From contig JAKMXF010000066.1 in the NCBI GenBank assembly GCA_024704765.1, forward strand, positions 372,001 through 436,000: a DNA stretch of 64,000 nt. Reading direction: 5' to 3'. Source of the stretch: Oopsacas minuta (taxonomy: Eukaryota; Animalia; Porifera). Position 1 is the first letter of the stretch. The number at the start of each line of letters is the position of its first letter. A program made the position numbers and the translations under genes. A model generated the notes under the pieces. It was given only the letters and a program-made list of their open reading frames with translations. It did no database searches and was not told the DNA's origin. Positions 4,681-20,878 of the stretch are shown here, piece by piece.

Positions 4681-7600
4681 ATGTCAATGGAAAAGCCGCG
4701 ATTCAAAGTAAGAGCTCAACTACCCGACGAGGAATCACCACACACATTCACGATTATGCCATCTGTCGCATTCCCAATGCTACACACCCACTTGAAGGAA
4801 ATTTCTGGGCTAAGTCAGATTATTGTGACGTACCAAGATGAAGAAGGTGACGATGTAACTCTGACTAATGAAGAGGAGTTCACAGAGGCTAAGAGGATGC
4901 TTGACCTCGGGAACATCTTATCACTACGACTTACAGTCACTGCAGGACCAAATGCTACCCCCTATAAGAAGGAAGAGCCTGTTATAACCACAACCTCCAG
5001 GCCACAGCCTACTCCACGATCTGCCGGGAAGACGAAGAAAACCGGATACTATCCCGAGCTGGCGGAGGAGCTGGGAGAGATGCTTCATGTATCTACACCA
5101 AAGGAATCTGTACCTGTGAACAGAAATACACAAACTACTCCTGACCTCACTAATGTAAGTTTAGTTGATTGGGGCCTTTTCTCATCTGGGTTCTTTAATT
5201 ATCGGAAATTTTGTCATCGAAAAAACATACATTGTAGAAAAGAAATAGACTTTTGGATGTAATTCCTTCTGATTATTTCGTATATATGATTTTTCTCGTG
5301 TAAAGAATTGGCAAAAAACTACTGTAATTCTCATTTATTTATTTTATACATTTTGAAATTCTTTAGAATAAATCTGAATGGACTGACTCTTTTCTCTCTA
5401 CTGCTTCTAAAGAAATAACAAATGTTCTAGACTCTCTACTCAAATCAGTAACAGCCGAGCCATCTTCTCTCATGAAGACCAGCTCCAGTAGCATGTGTCA
5501 TACGGGCATCCTCTGTAAGCTATGCAACAAAACTATAATCGGGAATCGTTACAAATGTGGGAATTGTGCCGAGTTCGATCTCTGTGAACTATGTCTACTG
5601 AATCCAGATGCTCACGACCCCACCCACATACTAATGCTTATACGTCTGCCCTGTCCAGGAGCTGGATACATTGACGATGAACCTGTACCAATGCTACGAG
5701 AGAACATATACCAGCCTAACGACAACAATGAGGAAAAGTTATTCAAACAATTCTACGCTGATAAACAGGCTAATAAGAAAGCAAAAAAGGCTTTGAAGTT
5801 AGAAAGGAAAATAAAGAAGATGATACTGCCCCAACATGTAGAGGCTAAGGTAATTTAATATACTATCATAACATTTATTCGAGCTGTCCATACCTACTCT
5901 ATATGATCTCAAAATTTGTATTATAGTCTATGGAAAGGGGTCTACTGGTGAACGGTTATGAACTGTTGTTTTATTTATACGTAGAAAACTATACGATAGT
6001 TATTAATATTCATTTATCAAGATTTTATTGTGCAAATTCTACAATGCATATGACGTAATACATTACACGCTTATGACCAATTCGGGAAAAATCCTTATAT
6101 GATTTATGGCTGCTAGTTGTCTGTATATGCTTAATAAAGAACCTTCTAATAATAATATTTCCATATACGTAGGTTGGAGCCTTACAGTCTGACATCGAAC
6201 TCAGGCGCAAAGAAATTAAAGAATTACGAGGAAAAATACGATCTACTAAGAAGGGCGTGGGTGTATTCTCTGAGGATATAGCATTACAAGAACCTTCTCA
6301 GGATTTCAGTGTTAGAATTCTAAGAGATACAAGCGAGTGTGCAGTCGTTCTTCCTATGAGTAGAGGTAGCTGTAAATGGCTTGTAGAAAACAACGGAGAT
6401 TCATTTTGGACTTCTGTTCGCTTCCATTGTGTGTCAGGAAATTTGTTAACAGATGAGAGACAGATTAGCTTGCCGTTCTGCTCACAGGGTGATCAGATAG
6501 AATTGGAGGTTCCCTTCACTGCCCCAGAGATCCAGGGCTATTACTACAGTAAATGGAGACTGTCACACCACGGGAAAGCATTCGGTCCATCTTTCAAAGC
6601 TGAGTGTAGAGTTATATTCGAGCATGTCTTATCTGATAAGAATGTAGAAGTAGATTCAGGTGCTGAAGATGATGAGGATCTAGCATCAGCTGATCAGGGC
6701 TTTGCTATAAGAGCATATCCTGGAGCTGGAGGCATGCAGCAACCTCTCATAGCTATTTCACATGAAGATTACTTGGAAGATAATTCTCTACAGGTTTGTG
6801 TTATTCCTAATTCATTATTTTATTTTGTCCATGTCCACCTACCTGAAAATCCTTAATTGAGAGCAGCTGCCTACGTTTTGTTGTTGCTTTACTTTGCAAG
6901 TGCGTAATTATAAATTAAATCATGCAATACATTGATTGTATTGCAATGATTTGATTGTCTAAATGGCTTAGTTTATAATTTTGTTGTGTTGAAACATGGA
7001 AAAGTCATAAACAATTTTTTGTGTATTAGCGATATTCAAATTCGACAATATATCATACCTGTATGATTAGTAAACCCCCGAATTCCCTACTACCCTGTTA
7101 TTGCTGACCAAACAATAATAATTTGATACGTAATAGTATTATGCCATATAAGGTTCAAAAGTTCAAATTCGTGCTATTTATTCAATTGAAATACAATCTT
7201 ATTCCTTAGCTCGTAATTCTAATTTTAGATAGTTTGAAGTTCGAAGCAAGTAATTTACCTTGCATGGAATTTGATATACGTACTGGCATGCTATTAATAG
7301 ATTTTAATGCTTTGTTCATACAGGTAATCTATTTTCTAATGAAAAATTTAATGAATTCATATTAGGTGTTGTTACGTTACGAAATTGAAATTGATGTGAT
7401 ATATGTTTTGGGTGAAAGAAACGAGAGTTACGACTTTCGAGGCCTCGTTGTACCCTTATCGAATTTCTAGTCGTTCTTAATATGCGAGATACTGCCATAT
7501 TGGGATAAATTTATGGATTATTGAGGGTAAAACTTTAGCATATATAAATTGATCGAATTCTTTATCTACCAACATGCCTTCTTGCAAATAATCATGCTTT

Positions 7601-14757: not shown

Positions 14758-17700
14758 ATGAACGAGCCACATGTGATATGTATGGTCTCCGATTTCTTCT
14801 ATCCCAATATGGGTGGAGTAGAGAATCACATATTTCAAGTAAGTGAGTGTCTTATGTCGAGAGGTCATAAAGTTATTGTTGTTACTCATGCTTATGGAGA
14901 TAGAACAGGAGTTAGATATCTCTCAGAATTCCTCAAGGTTTATTATCTACCTCTATATCCTCCCTTCTATAATCAGGTGAGATTATTATACAAACTGTAG
15001 CGGGTAGATATTGTGTATTTAAACCATATGGACACCAGGGAAAATTGTTGCCCTGATTAATACAGTAGAAATCGGATAAGACGTTACCTCTTCGGGAAAC
15101 GAAAATTGGTACACGTATTAGTGTACGTCTTATCCGAAAGAGATTGCATTAAAAAGAATGGGCACTAAATTTTGCTTGTAAAGAAGTAGTACATATGTAT
15201 TACCGAGTGTTGTCTCCGAGATAATTATAGTGTATATGAAGTTGAAATGTTCTGCTATGTTTCTCGACGAAAATACTCACGTAATAGCAAGATAGATCAA
15301 TTCTCTGTTATGCAAAATGATAGTATAATAGTGTTATCATTAATGTAATATACTGAATGAATCTATTTCTTTTCTTTATCGTGTAATACAGGTATTTTTT
15401 CATCCCTGTGCTTTGATAGCCATTTGAGTTGATCTATTAGATATTCACTCTGTTTTTCTTGTCTCTTCCTATCATCTTCATCCAGAATAGAAACGAAATC
15501 CTTCGTAATATGTAGTCTGTAAGAGTGATACAGTGCTACTCCTACTGTTGTAAAGGTAACGAAATATATTCCAAATAGATGAAGCTTTTCTACACGTCTG
15601 CTGATCTGAGTTAGTCCTACCTTAACCCTCATCTATCGAGCTATCTAATACGAAACGGTTTAAGATTTTAAATGTTAGAATATAATAGGTATAGAAGAAC
15701 TCAGTTAAGATGTATTACTTCTCATCTCAAATATTTAGTTCCTATTCATTTAATACAATCTCTATTTGGATAAGACACTCTGATTTTACGTAGTAATTAT
15801 GTTTTCCGAGGAGGTACGTCTTGTACGAGTTATACTGTATCTATACTGGAAATTTTCAGAGTTCATATCATATATCCAATTCTAACATTAAATTAGAAAA
15901 TTCGCTATTATTGCTATAAAAACCAACTAAAATGTGTTCTCCTTCATATTTTCACCAAATTTCCTCTTAGGTAATATTCCCTAGTGTAATTGGTCTTATC
16001 CCAATTCTTCGTGATATATTCATCAGAGAACAGATTGAGATTGTACATTGTCACAGTGCATTCTCTACACTTGGTCTAGAAGCTGTGAGTATAGCTATAT
16101 GCTTTGGACTCAAATGTATATTCACAGACCATTCATTATTCGGTTTTGCAGATGCTAGTGCTATTCTAATGAATAAAGTATTGGAGTTAGCTATGGTTAA
16201 TGTATCTCATGCAATATGTGTTTCTTATGTAAGTAAGCAGAATACTTATCTCAGAACTAAGATGCAACCTGAGAGGATATACGTTATTCCTAATGCAGTG
16301 GATACTAAGGTTAGATACCCATGGTCTAGCTAGCCTAATTATTTAGAATTAAATGCAATACGTATTATTACCGAATAATTTCAAAATTATTAATTACAAA
16401 CTTCTATAGGCATTTTTACCAGATCCTTCCGCTAGAGATCCTAACTACATCACTATATCTATTATGAGCAGATTAGTGTATAGGAAGGGAATGGATCTGG
16501 TAGCTGGTATTCTCCCAGAGATATGTGGAAGACATAAGGATGTTAGATTCATGATTGGAGGAGATGGACCTAAGAGGAAGCTATTAGATGAAGTGTGTGA
16601 TATGCATAATCTACATCAGCAGGTATTGTCTATGGGACAGTCTTATACGTATATATTGACATTTAGATCTGTTATATCGAACTCTGCTTATATCCAAGTA
16701 ATTATCATGGAGTTGACCGTATACATATGAGTATTAGTTAATTGAGGGAACAAATATATTGATAAACTTGTCAAAAGATAATAGTTACAAAAATAGTTTA
16801 TAAAGCAAAATATTCTTTAACTCAAAGTTTTGTTTGCATCAACTTGATAAAGTCTTCATCATTCTTCATGTACTCTATAATCGACTCACTGAATTTCTTT
16901 CTTGTACACATTTTAATTAGGTGTCGATATTGTTCTTCAGGGCTAAGAGTCTGGTTAAACCTATACAAGTTGTATTTTTCAAAATATTCGTATACTTCAT
17001 TGAGGTTCTTAGCTCTTAAGGATATTTTATGAAATACTTCGTATTCATGAGAGGGCAATATAGCGCAGAACTTTAAGCTCCCTTCTTGGACGTTAAACGT
17101 AAATACCATTCGCATCCTATTGCTAATATTTGGTAGCGTAGCAGAATAGAATCCAAAGAGAGAATGGGAGAGAGCATGAAATGCAAAAGGATCGATTCTT
17201 TCAGAACCATACTTCATCTTTTGGATATATTTTTTATCACTCACGGGAGCTTTTGATAATTCTTCTGTGAGCCTCTCTACTGTAGCTTGAGGTATGTTCA
17301 AAACAACATTTCGCGTTGATGTAGCTTGTTTCTTAATAGGTTTATATAGATAATAAAATAATGGAGGAGGCAGCAGAGAACCATTTTGTTTGTTTATTGT
17401 ATTTGCATAAAAAAGTTTGTAGAAGAAATGTGCTAATTTGGTTTGGAATGTAGTTTTATCAAGAAATTTTATCATCATAATCCGCGATCATCTACAGATA
17501 TACAAAATACATCCATGATATCAGGGTTCTATCTACTGGGGGGGGTGGGGGGAAGCTTCCTCCTCAAACACTTCAGCTTCCCCCCCAAAAATCTCATAAA
17601 ATGTACTATTAATCGCAATATATTATTCAATTGATAAATTATTAGAATATCAATTCATTGTGAAAATACTATTTGAAGTGTAAATAAATAACAAATGGGA

Positions 17701-20398
17701 AATCTTCATTATTAGGAATTAAATTAAAGGTTTGGTGTTTACTTCAAGGTTGTAATATTTTGATAATTGAGTACTAAGGATTTCAAAGCTTCCCCCCCAA
17801 ATTTAACATCCTAGATAGAACCCTGGATATGGTATCATAACATGTTAGAAATGTATTTTTACTATTTACGTAATATGTTACCCCAGTAATAATTATACAG
17901 CAGCCTACTGTGTACCCGCATGAACATGTACATGTATAGTATATATGCTTGATTATTATCAACATTTACAAAAGAGGAATACATTTTGAATACAATTTGA
18001 AACTTAGAATTAAACATTTCAAAGGATTACCTATAGGTGCTAAAACTTTCAAAGGATTACCTATAGGTGCTAAAACTTTCAAAGGATTACCTATAGGTGC
18101 TAAAACTTTATTACAAACATCTCTTAGTTTACAGTTGGGATCTGTTTCATCAAATTCTTAAATACATTATTTTGTTCGCTAATATAGTTTATGAGCTGTT
18201 GACTGTACTGAAGTTTAATACACTTTTTAAGCAAATTATTGTATTTATCTTCCACTTTCATGGACTGATTAAAACAGTTTCTATTATATCTCTCAAAGAA
18301 ATTTGATGCTTCCTCGTAGCTCTTGGCTTTTTCTAATACAATATGGAACAAGCTGTATTCATGATTTGGTAGTAGAGCAAAGTAGTTTAGCTTTCCTCCT
18401 TTGTTGTACTTGAATATCATTCTCATTCTCTTGAACGCGTCAGGAGCATTTGCTGGGGCTAGTATCCTAGCAGAATAGAATCCATAAAGATTGTGTGAGA
18501 GTGGGTGAAATTGGAAAGGTTCAATCCTTTTAAAATTAGAATCAATTGCGTTCTGTTTTTCTTCTAAATGTTGCAATTTATTCTTAATTTCTTGTAACTC
18601 AGTACTCACTGATTCATTTGTTGTATTTACAATCCTTGAAAGTATTCCTATTATTTCCTTGAAAAGATATTTCTGTATTCTGAGATCTTCCCTCAATTCC
18701 TGTGAATCTAAATGTAGCCTTTCAATTGTCTTTCCAGGGGTTAATGTAATTGCGTTATACGTCTTAATGATCTGTTCCCTATAATTACTGCTAATATAGG
18801 AGAACATTATCGGAGGAGGATCTGGTGTCGAACCATATGTTTGTCGAATGATAATTGGAGAGTTTATATTGTACAAATCATGCAGTAGCTTGGTTTGAGA
18901 TGATAGTTTCCAAAGCGAATGCAATCTGAACATTCAGAGCTAATGAAATATCTATAAACGAGGGACATGCACATGTCAGAATATTTAGTTCTGCATTTGT
19001 TAGAATGGATATTTTAGAGTTTTGCATATGTCAGACTAGTTGTTATCGAGTTCTGAATTTGTCAAAATAGTGTATATCGAGTTTATTGTGCTCCGATTCT
19101 GAAGACTTAATATTTGCATTTAGTTTCGACATTATTTAGTTGTTTATTGTTATGGATTGACAGAGTTAAATATCACCTTCCGGTAATTCTTTAAATATAG
19201 CTGTATTATAAAACACCTGGCCAGTTAACCAAATAGTCTACTGAAATGTCTGCTCTTCTCAGCTCAAGCAAAGCTAGCTAGATAATCCAATCATAATCCA
19301 ATTCTCCCGAAGTCAAAGCTCGATAAAAACCATTCTGACAAAGTCAGAACTCTAAAAACCGATTCTAACAAGTGCAGAACTAAATATTCTGACAAAATCA
19401 GAACAGTAAATTCTAACATGTACAGGTCTCCCTCTATAAACCAAGTCAAGAAGATTATTAATAAATTAATTAAAAAACTTTTCGAAGTAAACAAGCCAAA
19501 AAGCTGAATTTCTTGCTTTTTGGTGAGTCAGAGTGAACTTGATATTACGTTACGAAAATACGACAAATCTTATTCTTTTCTTCAGTTTGAATGATAGTTG
19601 TAATTTTGAACACTTTCCACTAATTTATGGAGAATTAAATGAGAATAAATACGGATAAATACGGATAAATTAAGCTAGCCTATATTATTCCTCGATAGTA
19701 TAGTGGTAAGTATCTCCGCCTGTCACGTGGAAGACCCGGGTTCGATTCCCGGTCGGGGAGCTTTTTGTTTCTTTTATATTTGCTTAATCCCAAATGCTCT
19801 TTCATTGAACCAGGGATTCATAGGATTTCATTTGCATTGCACTTTTTAGGTAACTTTTCTTGGAGGACAGAATCACGTCGATGTCCCAAAACACCTCGTC
19901 AAAGCTGACATTTTTCTCAACCCTTCATTGACTGAAGCATTCTGTGTCGCTATGTGTGAAGCCGTCAGCTGTGGACTTCAAGTTGTCAGCACAAATGTAG
20001 GCGGAATACCAGAAGTATTACCTCCAGGCATGGTTGAGTTATGTCAACCTAATGTTCAAGCTCTATGCGATGGCCTGGAGATTTGTATTCAGAATGTACG
20101 TGATAATAATATACCTGACCCATGGGAGTATCACAATAAAATGGAGGAGTTTTATAATTGGCATAATATAGCAGAGAGAACTGAAATAGTGTATGACAGT
20201 GCTAGAGATCAACCGACACGTTCTCGAGCTGAATTACTGATAACAGCCTATTCTCTTGGCCCAGTTATTGGGAAGTTGGTGGTTATTCTGTACTCTATTA
20301 GCATGGCGCTGTTATTGCTATGTAGTGTTGTCTGGCCGAAGTCTAATATCGATATTGTACCCGAGTATGGATTCCATCGAAAGAGGAAATCCAAGTGA
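14758..20398 (+). CDS. PIGA: GPI N-acetylglucosaminyltransferase subunit A, join(14758..14976,15971..16309,16410..16622,19850..20398)
   Basis: [61 protein letters not shown]...[22 protein letters not shown] and a C-terminal TM helix. All introns are GT-AG, phase 0. Confidence 0.95.
15063..15233. mobile_element. Degenerate Tigger/pogo-like MITE in PIGA intron 1
   Basis: Starts TA|CAGTAGAAATCGGATAAGACG. The first ~110 bp align by eye with the reverse complement of 15725-15839. Confidence 0.5.
15363..15632 (-). CDS. Small single-pass membrane protein, tentatively PET117-like cytochrome c oxidase assembly factor, antisense in PIGA intron 1
   Basis: ATG-started 89-aa ORF with one hydrophobic helix ([17 protein letters not shown]) and a charged helical tail. 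Pattern T.TV..V...D...KRQEKQ..L.DQ..L...R resembles PET117 from memory; the match is weak. Confidence 0.5.
   Translation of the reverse strand: MRVKVGLTQISRRVEKLHLFGIYFVTFTTVGVALYHSYRLHITKDFVSILDEDDRKRQEKQSEYLIDQLKWLSKHRDEKIPVLHDKEKK
15690..15837. mobile_element. Degenerate Tigger/pogo-like MITE, inverted relative to the 15063 copy
   Basis: Ends GTCTTGTACGAGTTATACTG|TA; decayed left TIR near 15690. Confidence 0.45.
16822..17478 (-). CDS. Intronless ORF with a RelE/YoeB-like toxin motif, antisense in PIGA intron 3; paralog of 18124..18933
   Basis: 218-aa [22 protein letters not shown]...RMRMVFTF...[12 protein letters not shown] aligns with the paralog over ~130 aa, which supports coding status. 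Confidence 0.75.
   Translation of the reverse strand: MMIKFLDKTTFQTKLAHFFYKLFYANTINKQNGSLLPPPLFYYLYKPIKKQATSTRNVVLNIPQATVERLTEELSKAPVSDKKYIQKMKYGSERIDPFAFHALSHSLFGFYSATLPNISNRMRMVFTFNVQEGSLKFCAILPSHEYEVFHKISLRAKNLNEVYEYFEKYNLYRFNQTLSPEEQYRHLIKMCTRKKFSESIIEYMKNDEDFIKLMQTKL
17547..17585. repeat. Perfect 11-bp GC-rich inverted repeat with 17-nt loop
   Basis: GGGGGGAAGCT (17547-17557) pairs with AGCTTCCCCCC (17575-17585). The motif AGCTTCCCCCCCAAA recurs near 17788. Confidence 0.7.
18017..18110. repeat. 30-bp tandem repeat, three exact copies
   Basis: TTTCAAAGGATTACCTATAGGTGCTAAAAC x3, just 3' of the stop of ORF 18124..18933. Confidence 0.95.
18124..18933 (-). CDS. Intronless ORF with a RelE/YoeB-like toxin motif, antisense in PIGA intron 3
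   Basis: 269-aa ATG ORF containing [16 protein letters not shown]...RMRMIFKY...[12 protein letters not shown]; paralog at 16822..17478. Confidence 0.78.
   Translation of the reverse strand: MFRLHSLWKLSSQTKLLHDLYNINSPIIIRQTYGSTPDPPPIMFSYISSNYREQIIKTYNAITLTPGKTIERLHLDSQELREDLRIQKYLFKEIIGILSRIVNTTNESVSTELQEIKNKLQHLEEKQNAIDSNFKRIEPFQFHPLSHNLYGFYSARILAPANAPDAFKRMRMIFKYNKGGKLNYFALLPNHEYSLFHIVLEKAKSYEEASNFFERYNRNCFNQSMKVEDKYNNLLKKCIKLQYSQQLINYISEQNNVFKNLMKQIPTVN
19689..19760 (+). tRNA. tRNA-Asp (GTC) inside PIGA intron 3
   Basis: 72 nt TCCTCGATAGTATAGTGGTAAGTATCTCCGCCTGTCACGTGGAAGACCCGGGTTCGATTCCCGGTCGGGGAG; A box, GTC anticodon loop, GGTTCGATTCC B box; close to eukaryotic tRNA-Asp. Confidence 0.95.
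19762..19766 (+). terminator. RNA polymerase III terminator (T5)
   Basis: TTTTT starts one base after the tRNA 3' end. Confidence 0.75.
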
Positions 20399-20878
20399 CA
20401 GGTATTCGTTTGACAATATATGCCATTCTCACTTGTTTCTATACTATGTGTATGTTTGTGTATAATTGAAGTGTATTGTTTATGGTATTACATACATGTA
20501 TTATATTTGAGAATATTATCTACTCACAAATTTTACACAGTTAACACTCTTCGTTTGCAAGAACAAGTAAAAATTCGCCAATATTGTGCAAAATGCTATC
20601 CTGGACTATCGACTTGGGAAGTTTCAAAAATCGTGAGGTTCGACTCGAGAAGACTCTCATGGTTTAGCATTAGTTTTCTAACCAAAACTCAAAGATTTTG
20701 TTGTAAGTGTAGACCCGAAATCATGAGAGTTAGAGTCCTGGCTCTCTAGTATAAATTAATAAGGAATATCCCTAAAATGCTGGATAGTTGTCATTTATCT
20801 ATAGCCATATACGTATTATGTAGCTAACGCAATAGCTAATAATAATAATAATAACTAAATATTACTGAACAATTTGTA

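Follow-up and report, generated by a model that had tools for sequence, protein, structure and literature searches.

How does a pair of genes bearing the signature of a bacterial mRNA-cleaving toxin come to lie inside an intron of an animal gene, and what do they encode there? The question is raised by a 64,000-nucleotide stretch of genomic DNA from Oopsacas minuta, a glass sponge (GenBank assembly GCA_024704765.1, contig JAKMXF010000066.1, positions 372,001 to 436,000 of the forward strand), which in its entirety is referred to here as the window. Within an intron of the PIGA gene, and on the strand opposite to it, lie two open reading frames (ORFs) encoding proteins of 269 and 218 amino acids, hereafter the long and short paralogs. 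A sequence-only reading of the window had described them as tandem, intronless paralogs resembling YoeB/RelE toxins. This description held: both ORFs are uninterrupted on the minus strand, the short gene is also gap-free in an RNA-like contig, and alignment of the two products (31% identity over 255 columns, BLASTP E value of 1e-35) marks them as clear paralogs. They are the only copies of their family in the whole assembly (61.5 Mb in 365 contigs), and the local GC content of 0.33 to 0.34 is like that of the remainder of the window. We argue here that both are real, expressed nuclear genes of the sponge and that their products are predicted to adopt the RelE/ParE toxin fold.

Evidence for the fold comes from AlphaFold2 models built on an alignment of nine family sequences. 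The models had predicted local distance difference test (pLDDT) scores of 77 for the long and 75 for the short paralog, with predicted template modeling (pTM) scores of 0.65 and 0.69, respectively. In the long model, a disordered N terminus (residues 1 to 40) is followed by three helices ahead of the sheet (49 to 64, 67 to 102, and 106 to 133), four strands (142 to 144, 152 to 156, 171 to 176, and 182 to 188), and five C-terminal helices (193 to 264). The short model likewise proceeds from a disordered N terminus (1 to 34) through three helices (46 to 60, 64 to 76, and 81 to 91) and five strands (93 to 95, 98 to 102, 110 to 114, 122 to 129, and 134 to 142) to five C-terminal helices (143 to 214). 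Upstream helices able to serve as the N-terminal helices of RelE, proposed on the basis of sequence, are therefore present in the models; in the long copy, the second and third of these are stretched into a hairpin with about 35 residues per arm.

Comparisons of these models with known structures led repeatedly to the same superfamily. Foldseek returned no match in the PDB at an E value of ≤0.001; the top ranks for both models were dominated by HigB, HP0892, RelE, and YoeB, the highest-ranked match of the short model and the second-ranked match of the long model being HigB. Upon re-alignment with VIA, the long model superposed on HigB (5iwh) with a Z score of 8.4 and a root mean square deviation (rmsd) of 2.4 Å over 78 of 97 residues, spanning model residues 39 to 193, while the segment from 67 to 141 gave Z scores of about 9 with generic helical hairpins only. 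The short model was compared with all 48,161 representative PDB chains by using VIA wide, which was not led by Foldseek. Every match spanning residues 35 to 148 was a RelE/ParE-superfamily protein, accounting for 16 of the top 50 rows, and the other rows in the top 50 were weak, generic matches to the C-terminal helices. The short model matched HigB with a Z score of 7.2 (82 of 99 residues aligned) and Escherichia coli YoeB (2A6Q) with a Z score of 6.4 (74 of 84 residues aligned, 22% identity), the whole 84-residue YoeB chain superposing on residues 35 to 144. Further matches were to HP0892-type proteins (Z score of 5.9), Staphylococcus aureus YoeB (5.8), YafQ (5.8), and E. coli HigB (5.7), and the top 50 also contained RelE from four organisms, GraT, PrpT, and ParE (ParE1, Z score of 5.4; ParDE, Z score of 4.7). 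A shape search of the ESM Atlas recovered HigB-like, HigB, YafQ, and ParE-like clusters (TM scores of 0.66 to 0.74 by target and rmsd values of 2.5 to 3.3), and RelE/ParE was also indicated by a search on language-model features and by the low-confidence ESMFold model that the Atlas itself supplies.

Because several largely separate routes reach one small superfamily and cover whole toxin chains, we take the RelE/ParE fold of both paralogs to be established in silico with high confidence. Membership at the level of the fold is evident from whole-chain superposition on HigB, YoeB, YafQ, RelE, and ParE, and the fold on which the sequence-only reading depended is thus found by VIA and in the ESM Atlas alike. 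Proteus vulgaris HigB (PDB 4PX8, 5IWH, and 4YPB) is the best structural match of both paralogs; however, identity to it is only 12 to 16%, the sponge genes have no HigA partner, and the sponge proteins carry extra domains. RelE, YafQ, GraT, HP0892, and ParE share the beta-alpha-alpha-beta-sheet fold (Z scores of 4.7 to 5.9), but they have other sets of active-site residues, are bacterial or archaeal, and are encoded adjacent to an antitoxin.

Sequence comparison adds a more specific, if fainter, signal. The E. coli YoeB sequence given in the sequence-only reading proved correct when yoeB of strain K-12 was translated, the motif stretches quoted from both copies were located in the proteins (see the table), and the striking 14-residue match to YoeB is real, with 10 of 14 residues identical (E value of 1e-4 in a single pairwise BLASTP comparison). 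The motif PF...(E/H)PL.HNL.GF.S..I...R(L/M)(V/I)(Y/F) and a C-terminal His/Tyr are common to YoeB and the sponge proteins. A YoeB profile of 74 sequences taken from genomic loci was aligned by hhalign with the sponge family profile (P values of 5e-4 to 1.5e-3) and with the domain of the short paralog (P value of 1.8e-4, probability of 48%, and 60 columns from YoeB residue 20 to 83). Column-shuffled YoeB profiles scored 10 to 12 ± 2.5 versus the observed 23.6 to 25.9, and 1 of 200 shuffles attained the observed value. The profile-profile alignment to YoeB is weak but specific (P value of about 2e-4), and the relationship to YoeB as judged from sequence alone is suggestive.

Does the fold retain a working active site? 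In YoeB, E46, R59, R65, H83, and Y84 are implicated in ribosome-dependent mRNA cleavage, with R59 in a supporting role. The nine family sequences, which share 27 to 45% identity, have H143, R171, H191, and Y193 (long-copy numbering) as the invariant polar residues of their core, and these were mapped onto YoeB by profile alignment, not by coordinates. H143 falls at E46, so that an invariant His replaces the general base, and R171 falls at R65; H191 falls at H83 and Y193 just past Y84, each in a register uncertain by one or two residues. R156 lies at the position of R59; this position holds Arg in the long copy and Thr in the short one, and it varies among family members. The sequence-only reading had aligned R59, R65, and the terminal His/Tyr of the long copy with YoeB and had denied the 218-residue copy an R59 equivalent; the two arginines and the latter point stand, while the terminal pair agrees to within one or two residues. 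That exactly these residues, at catalytic positions, never change in either paralog line is an argument for a working site.

The same residues bear on whether the proteins might instead be ParE-like topoisomerase poisons that do not act on RNA. Such a function would be compatible with the shared fold, with the Z scores for ParE1 and ParDE given above, and with a ParE-like Atlas cluster (TM score of 0.70), but the best structural similarity and all of the sequence similarity are to the RNase branch (HigB, YoeB, YafQ, and RelE), and the conserved His/Arg/His/Tyr set fits an RNase site. We consider a ParE-like function very improbable.

The sponge proteins are 2.5 to 3 times longer than YoeB, from which they also differ by a presequence-like N terminus and a five-helix C-terminal domain. 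A basic, acid-poor N-terminal stretch with a helix is the usual appearance of a mitochondrial presequence. In all nine proteins, the first 35 residues contain 4 to 8 Lys plus Arg and 0 to 1 Asp plus Glu, versus 9 to 13% Asp plus Glu in the remainder, and this stretch shows little sequence conservation, low pLDDT, and a predicted helix ahead of the folded domain. These N termini were overlooked in the sequence-only reading; they point to an organelle, and we lean slightly toward interpreting them as mitochondrial import presequences. The helical C-terminal domain of about 70 residues that had been proposed for both copies is present in the AlphaFold models and has invariant residues of its own (A203, E208, N217, F221, and C238). 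It has no convincing fold match by VIA wide over the 48,161 PDB chains or in the ESM Atlas, where matches were generic helical ones only. The possibility that this domain is a fused antitoxin of the HigA-like/Xre-type helix-turn-helix (HTH) class was considered but gained no support: there was no HTH repressor among the matches, and only one weak Atlas row contained a HigB-HTH fusion.

A YefM-type antitoxin, with which YoeB is paired, is also missing from the sponge genes. No antitoxin-sized conserved ORF lies beside either gene, the sole conserved neighbor being the paralog itself. In two other assemblies with the pair (L003 and L004), the gaps between the genes are about 180 to 190 bp, and there is therefore no room for an antitoxin gene; in two more (L086 and L087), the gene occurs once, unaccompanied by any partner ORF from the family. 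The absence of an adjacent antitoxin, as first noted, is thereby confirmed both at this locus and in orthologous loci. A predicted heterodimer of the two paralogs scored 0.00, which weighs neither for nor against binding.

We propose, with a little better than even confidence, that the proteins descend from a bacterial mRNA interferase of the YoeB/HigB type that was taken over by the host and acts on the ribosome. Many observations weigh against this proposal. No family hidden Markov model (HMM) matched the proteins at an E value of ≤10 in Pfam, NCBIfam, or PDB sequences, whether single sequences or profiles were used; nor did these databases yield a better match to an unrelated family, which the sequence-only reading had named as grounds for doubt. 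Genome-wide scans found no match for the Txe/YoeB HMM (PF06769; E value of ≤1) or for the ParE (PF05016) and HigB-like (PF05015) HMMs (E value of ≤10), all of which do ring in control genomes. The hhalign probabilities against YoeB are only 17 to 48%, the AlphaFold2 alignment is shallow, and Z scores of 5 to 8 are middling according to the alignment tool's own notes. In addition, the general base E46 is substituted by His, the R59 equivalent is not conserved, the C-terminal H-E-Y can be placed only to within one or two positions, the presequence is judged from composition, and no bacterial relative is near enough to name a donor.

Some of these points would fit a lineage-specific orphan family without descent from RelE, in which the small alpha/beta fold and the 14-residue motif are convergent or the model is biased toward a known fold. 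The lack of an HMM match, an hhalign probability below 50%, the single shuffle that attained the observed score, and an alignment of nine sequences are all as such an orphan would have them. Nevertheless, AlphaFold2 with VIA, Foldseek, ESM embeddings, the Atlas ESMFold model, and hhalign converge on one small superfamily, the structural matches span whole toxin chains, and the region of sequence similarity involves the very same strands and catalytic positions, all of which make an orphan origin improbable.

The main rival to the proposal keeps the fold and the ancestry and drops catalysis. The proteins would then be noncleaving ribosome- or RNA-binding factors, such as an assembly factor, rescue factor, or regulatory adaptor, with the C-terminal domain doing the real work. 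The replacement of E46 and the variable R59 equivalent favor this idea, as does a C-terminal domain that equals the core in conservation and in modeling confidence, and the absence of an antitoxin is easier to tolerate with a harmless protein. However, the invariant polar residues of the core occupy exactly the catalytic positions in both paralog lines, and the relatives HigB and YafQ normally rely on His for catalysis. We therefore regard loss of catalysis as rather unlikely and retain descent from a ribosome-acting interferase as the preferred explanation.

In contrast to YoeB, the sponge genes are eukaryotic and nuclear, and the transcript of the short one is spliced leader (SL) trans-spliced. 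Direct evidence for their status comes from four public sequencing runs of one sample, which were compared with positions 15300 to 20800 of the window. Three of the four runs gave unspliced, DNA-like contigs, two of which (2.4 kb and 2.9 kb) span from a neighboring gene for an 89-residue protein across PIGA exons and as far as the end of the short ORF, thus supplying for this ORF the link to PIGA that had been sought from reads. The remaining run, X4, is RNA-like and contains contigs with GT..AG joints at 16307>16408 and 16620>19848, which are PIGA splice junctions; from the second joint it follows that the 3.2-kb PIGA intron holding both antisense ORFs is spliced out. X4 contigs also cover both ORFs (16854 to 17493, 18080 to 18522, and bins up to 18979), and one ends about 30 nucleotides (nt) beyond the AATAAA signal of the long gene. 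Both ORFs are real, expressed nuclear genes of the glass sponge.

Trans-splicing was recognized at the 5′ end of the short gene, where the X4 contig crosses a genomic AG located 13 nt upstream of the ATG and continues into letters absent from the window. The same foreign letters follow the AG upstream of the 89-residue protein gene (15645 to 15646, minus strand). The reverse complement of this leader occurs five times in the genome, and at four of these sites it is followed by AG and then GTAAGT within near-identical units. The four units (L089 to L092; three in G000 C10 and one in C16) end in TCTTCATAAAAAACTTACAG and then GTAAGT, with CTTACAG directly before the GTAAGT, as would be expected of SL RNA genes. 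Because the leader on the short gene's mRNA matches genomic SL RNA genes, this mRNA is processed by the sponge's own nuclear machinery. SL trans-splicing has already been reported in another glass sponge (PMC10282587). The fifth leader copy (L093; G000:C314:274344-274361, minus strand) consists of the 3′ part of the leader and continues into ordinary sequence rather than AG and GTAAGT, and it may be a retrocopy of a leader-bearing mRNA.

These observations also address whether the genes are a bacterial contaminant or a misassembled symbiont insert, a concern that arises naturally when the closest known fold is bacterial. The position within the PIGA intron is conserved by synteny in four other assemblies (L003, L004, L086, and L087), the short gene's mRNA bears the host spliced leader, the GC content is host-like, DNA contigs join the locus to PIGA exons, and the YoeB, ParE, and HigB-like HMMs detect no ordinary toxin-antitoxin system anywhere in the assembly. 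For practical purposes contamination is refuted, its probability being negligible.

How widely is the family distributed? When 1.84 billion representative proteins were searched exhaustively with phmmer, eight matches were real relatives and one was a spurious repeat, and two profile searches added three further members and nothing from outside the family; at an E value of ≤10, neither approach found a bacterial protein. The family is small and was seen only in assemblies that we judge sponge-like by synteny and that share a gene neighborhood. L003 and L004 have the long and short pair beside the same PIGA exons and the same 89-residue protein gene. L086 and L087 each have a single long-type copy between PIGA exons within the same wider neighborhood (cation-efflux, methyltransferase, and POLH genes). 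L088 has one short-type copy (6001 to 6624) elsewhere, near RanBP1 and TMEM65 genes; in this more distant assembly, the only family member within the 12.6-kb locus covered lies outside PIGA. A comparison of L003 with L004 gave dN/dS values of 0.36 (long copy) and 0.30 (short copy), which we count as evidence of selection. A tree of the nine sequences had support of only 57/36 at its deep nodes, which bear on the order of duplication.

These results suggest how a toxin might have become a host protein. A bacterial gene for a YoeB/HigB-type mRNA interferase would have entered, or survived in, the glass-sponge lineage, where it would have shed its antitoxin and come to include an import signal as well as a new C-terminal domain. 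The protein may bind a ribosome, of which the bacterial-type mitoribosome is the most plausible candidate, and cleave RNA at the A site or at least bind there, with the antitoxin's control replaced by confinement to the organelle or by the added C-terminal domain. In its fullest form, the scenario is that glass sponges acquired such an interferase, dropped the antitoxin, added the import signal and C-terminal domain, duplicated the gene in tandem in one lineage, and now use the protein as an active endonuclease on their own mitoribosomes; as a whole, we consider this conceivable but doubtful. The sequence-only reading had proposed a RelE-superfamily nuclease family in an animal, either horizontally acquired or deeply divergent. 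Its fold and its standing as host genes are supported, whereas nuclease activity and the choice of transfer over divergence, like the ribosome as target, the mitochondrial location, and homology by descent, are what we infer.

RelE/ParE toxins are viewed as modules of addiction and stress in prokaryotes, and in full-text literature searches we encountered no description of a RelE-fold family that is animal encoded or mitochondrial. The novelty lies in the host, the architecture, and the genetic setting, the fold itself being known. A conserved, expressed, and antitoxin-free version in a whole animal group raises the questions of how a ribosome-directed toxin is tamed and what role it has in a eukaryotic cell. 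Should the import signal prove genuine, the family could be a sign of mRNA surveillance or turnover of a new type on mitoribosomes, and if the proteins are truly active mitoribosomal endonucleases, they would be the first RelE-superfamily enzyme to serve as a host factor in an animal. Cue2/NONU-1 SMR endonucleases and the mitochondrial rescue factors ICT1 and C12orf65 act on stalled ribosomes and offer a possible functional analogy only, their folds being unrelated to that of the sponge family. The family also lends itself to a clean test of gene transfer into early-branching animals and offers four residues to mutate. A link to the +1 frameshifting in glass-sponge mitochondria (PMC5633667) was considered and downgraded, as O. 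minuta mitochondrial DNA is reported to be without +1 frameshifts (PMC4520895), yet the genes are kept.

The coordinates of the gene pair and its parts are collected in the table.

Table 1. Features of the paralogous gene pair in the window
Feature	Position	Strand	Evidence
Long paralog, 269 amino acids, intronless coding sequence	18124..18933	minus	Stop codon 18124-18126; orthologs keep the N terminus from M1; X4 RNA-like contigs 18080-18522 and bins to 18979
Short paralog, 218 amino acids, intronless coding sequence	16822..17478	minus	X4 contig 16854-17493; paralogy to long copy
Predicted RelE/ParE-fold domain, long paralog, residues ~39-193	18355..18819	minus	AlphaFold2 model, pLDDT 77; HigB 5iwh match; Foldseek top list
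Predicted RelE/ParE-fold domain, short paralog, residues ~35-148	17035..17376	minus	AlphaFold2 model, pLDDT 75; HigB, YoeB 2a6q, YafQ, RelE, GraT, and ParE matches; ESM Atlas clusters
Conserved core motif, long copy, residues 136-193, with H143, R171, H191, Y193	18355..18528	minus	Invariant columns; hhalign against YoeB E46, R65, H83
Conserved core motif, short copy, residues 94-146, with invariant H101, R123, H144, Y146	17041..17199	minus	
Predicted five-helix C-terminal domain, long copy, residues 194-269	18127..18354	minus	Helices 193-264, pLDDT about 90; generic helical matches only
Predicted five-helix C-terminal domain, short copy, residues ~149-218	16825..17034	minus	Generic helical matches, Z ≤ 6.6
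Presequence-like N terminus, long copy, residues 1-38	18820..18933	minus	Basic, hydroxylated, nearly acid-free; low pLDDT; predicted helix 4-23
Presequence-like N terminus, short copy, residues 1-34	17377..17478	minus	Composition and model
AG trans-splice acceptor of short gene, 13 nt upstream of ATG	17492..17493	minus	X4 contig end beyond 17493; matching SL RNA genes
AATAAA signal, 12 nt past stop codon of long gene	18107..18112	minus	RNA-like contig ends at 18080
PIGA intron hosting both genes on the opposite strand	16621..19847	plus	GT..AG joint 16620>19848 in X4 only; PIGA exon ORFs

The immediate surroundings of the pair show several further characteristics. The 89-residue protein gene (15363 to 15632, minus strand) encodes one hydrophobic segment, its mRNA is SL trans-spliced, and it is kept beside PIGA in L003 and L004. 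In these two assemblies, the paralogs lie head to tail with very short spacers (10766 to 10953 in L003 and 1184 to 1362 in L004), and in O. minuta the downstream gene bears the leader; a head-to-tail pair with a leader on the downstream gene is how an operon that trans-splicing resolves would be expected to look. The spacer between the O. minuta paralogs contains an interspersed repeat with G/C runs (17508 to 17875), over which the summed contig depth in the DNA-like runs is 10 to 50 times that of the flanks; this stretch is missing from L003 and L004, and the spacer there is short. Finally, a 30-bp unit is repeated 3.2 times (98% matches) at 18012 to 18109, right after the poly(A) signal of the long paralog, and the RNA-like contig ends inside it.

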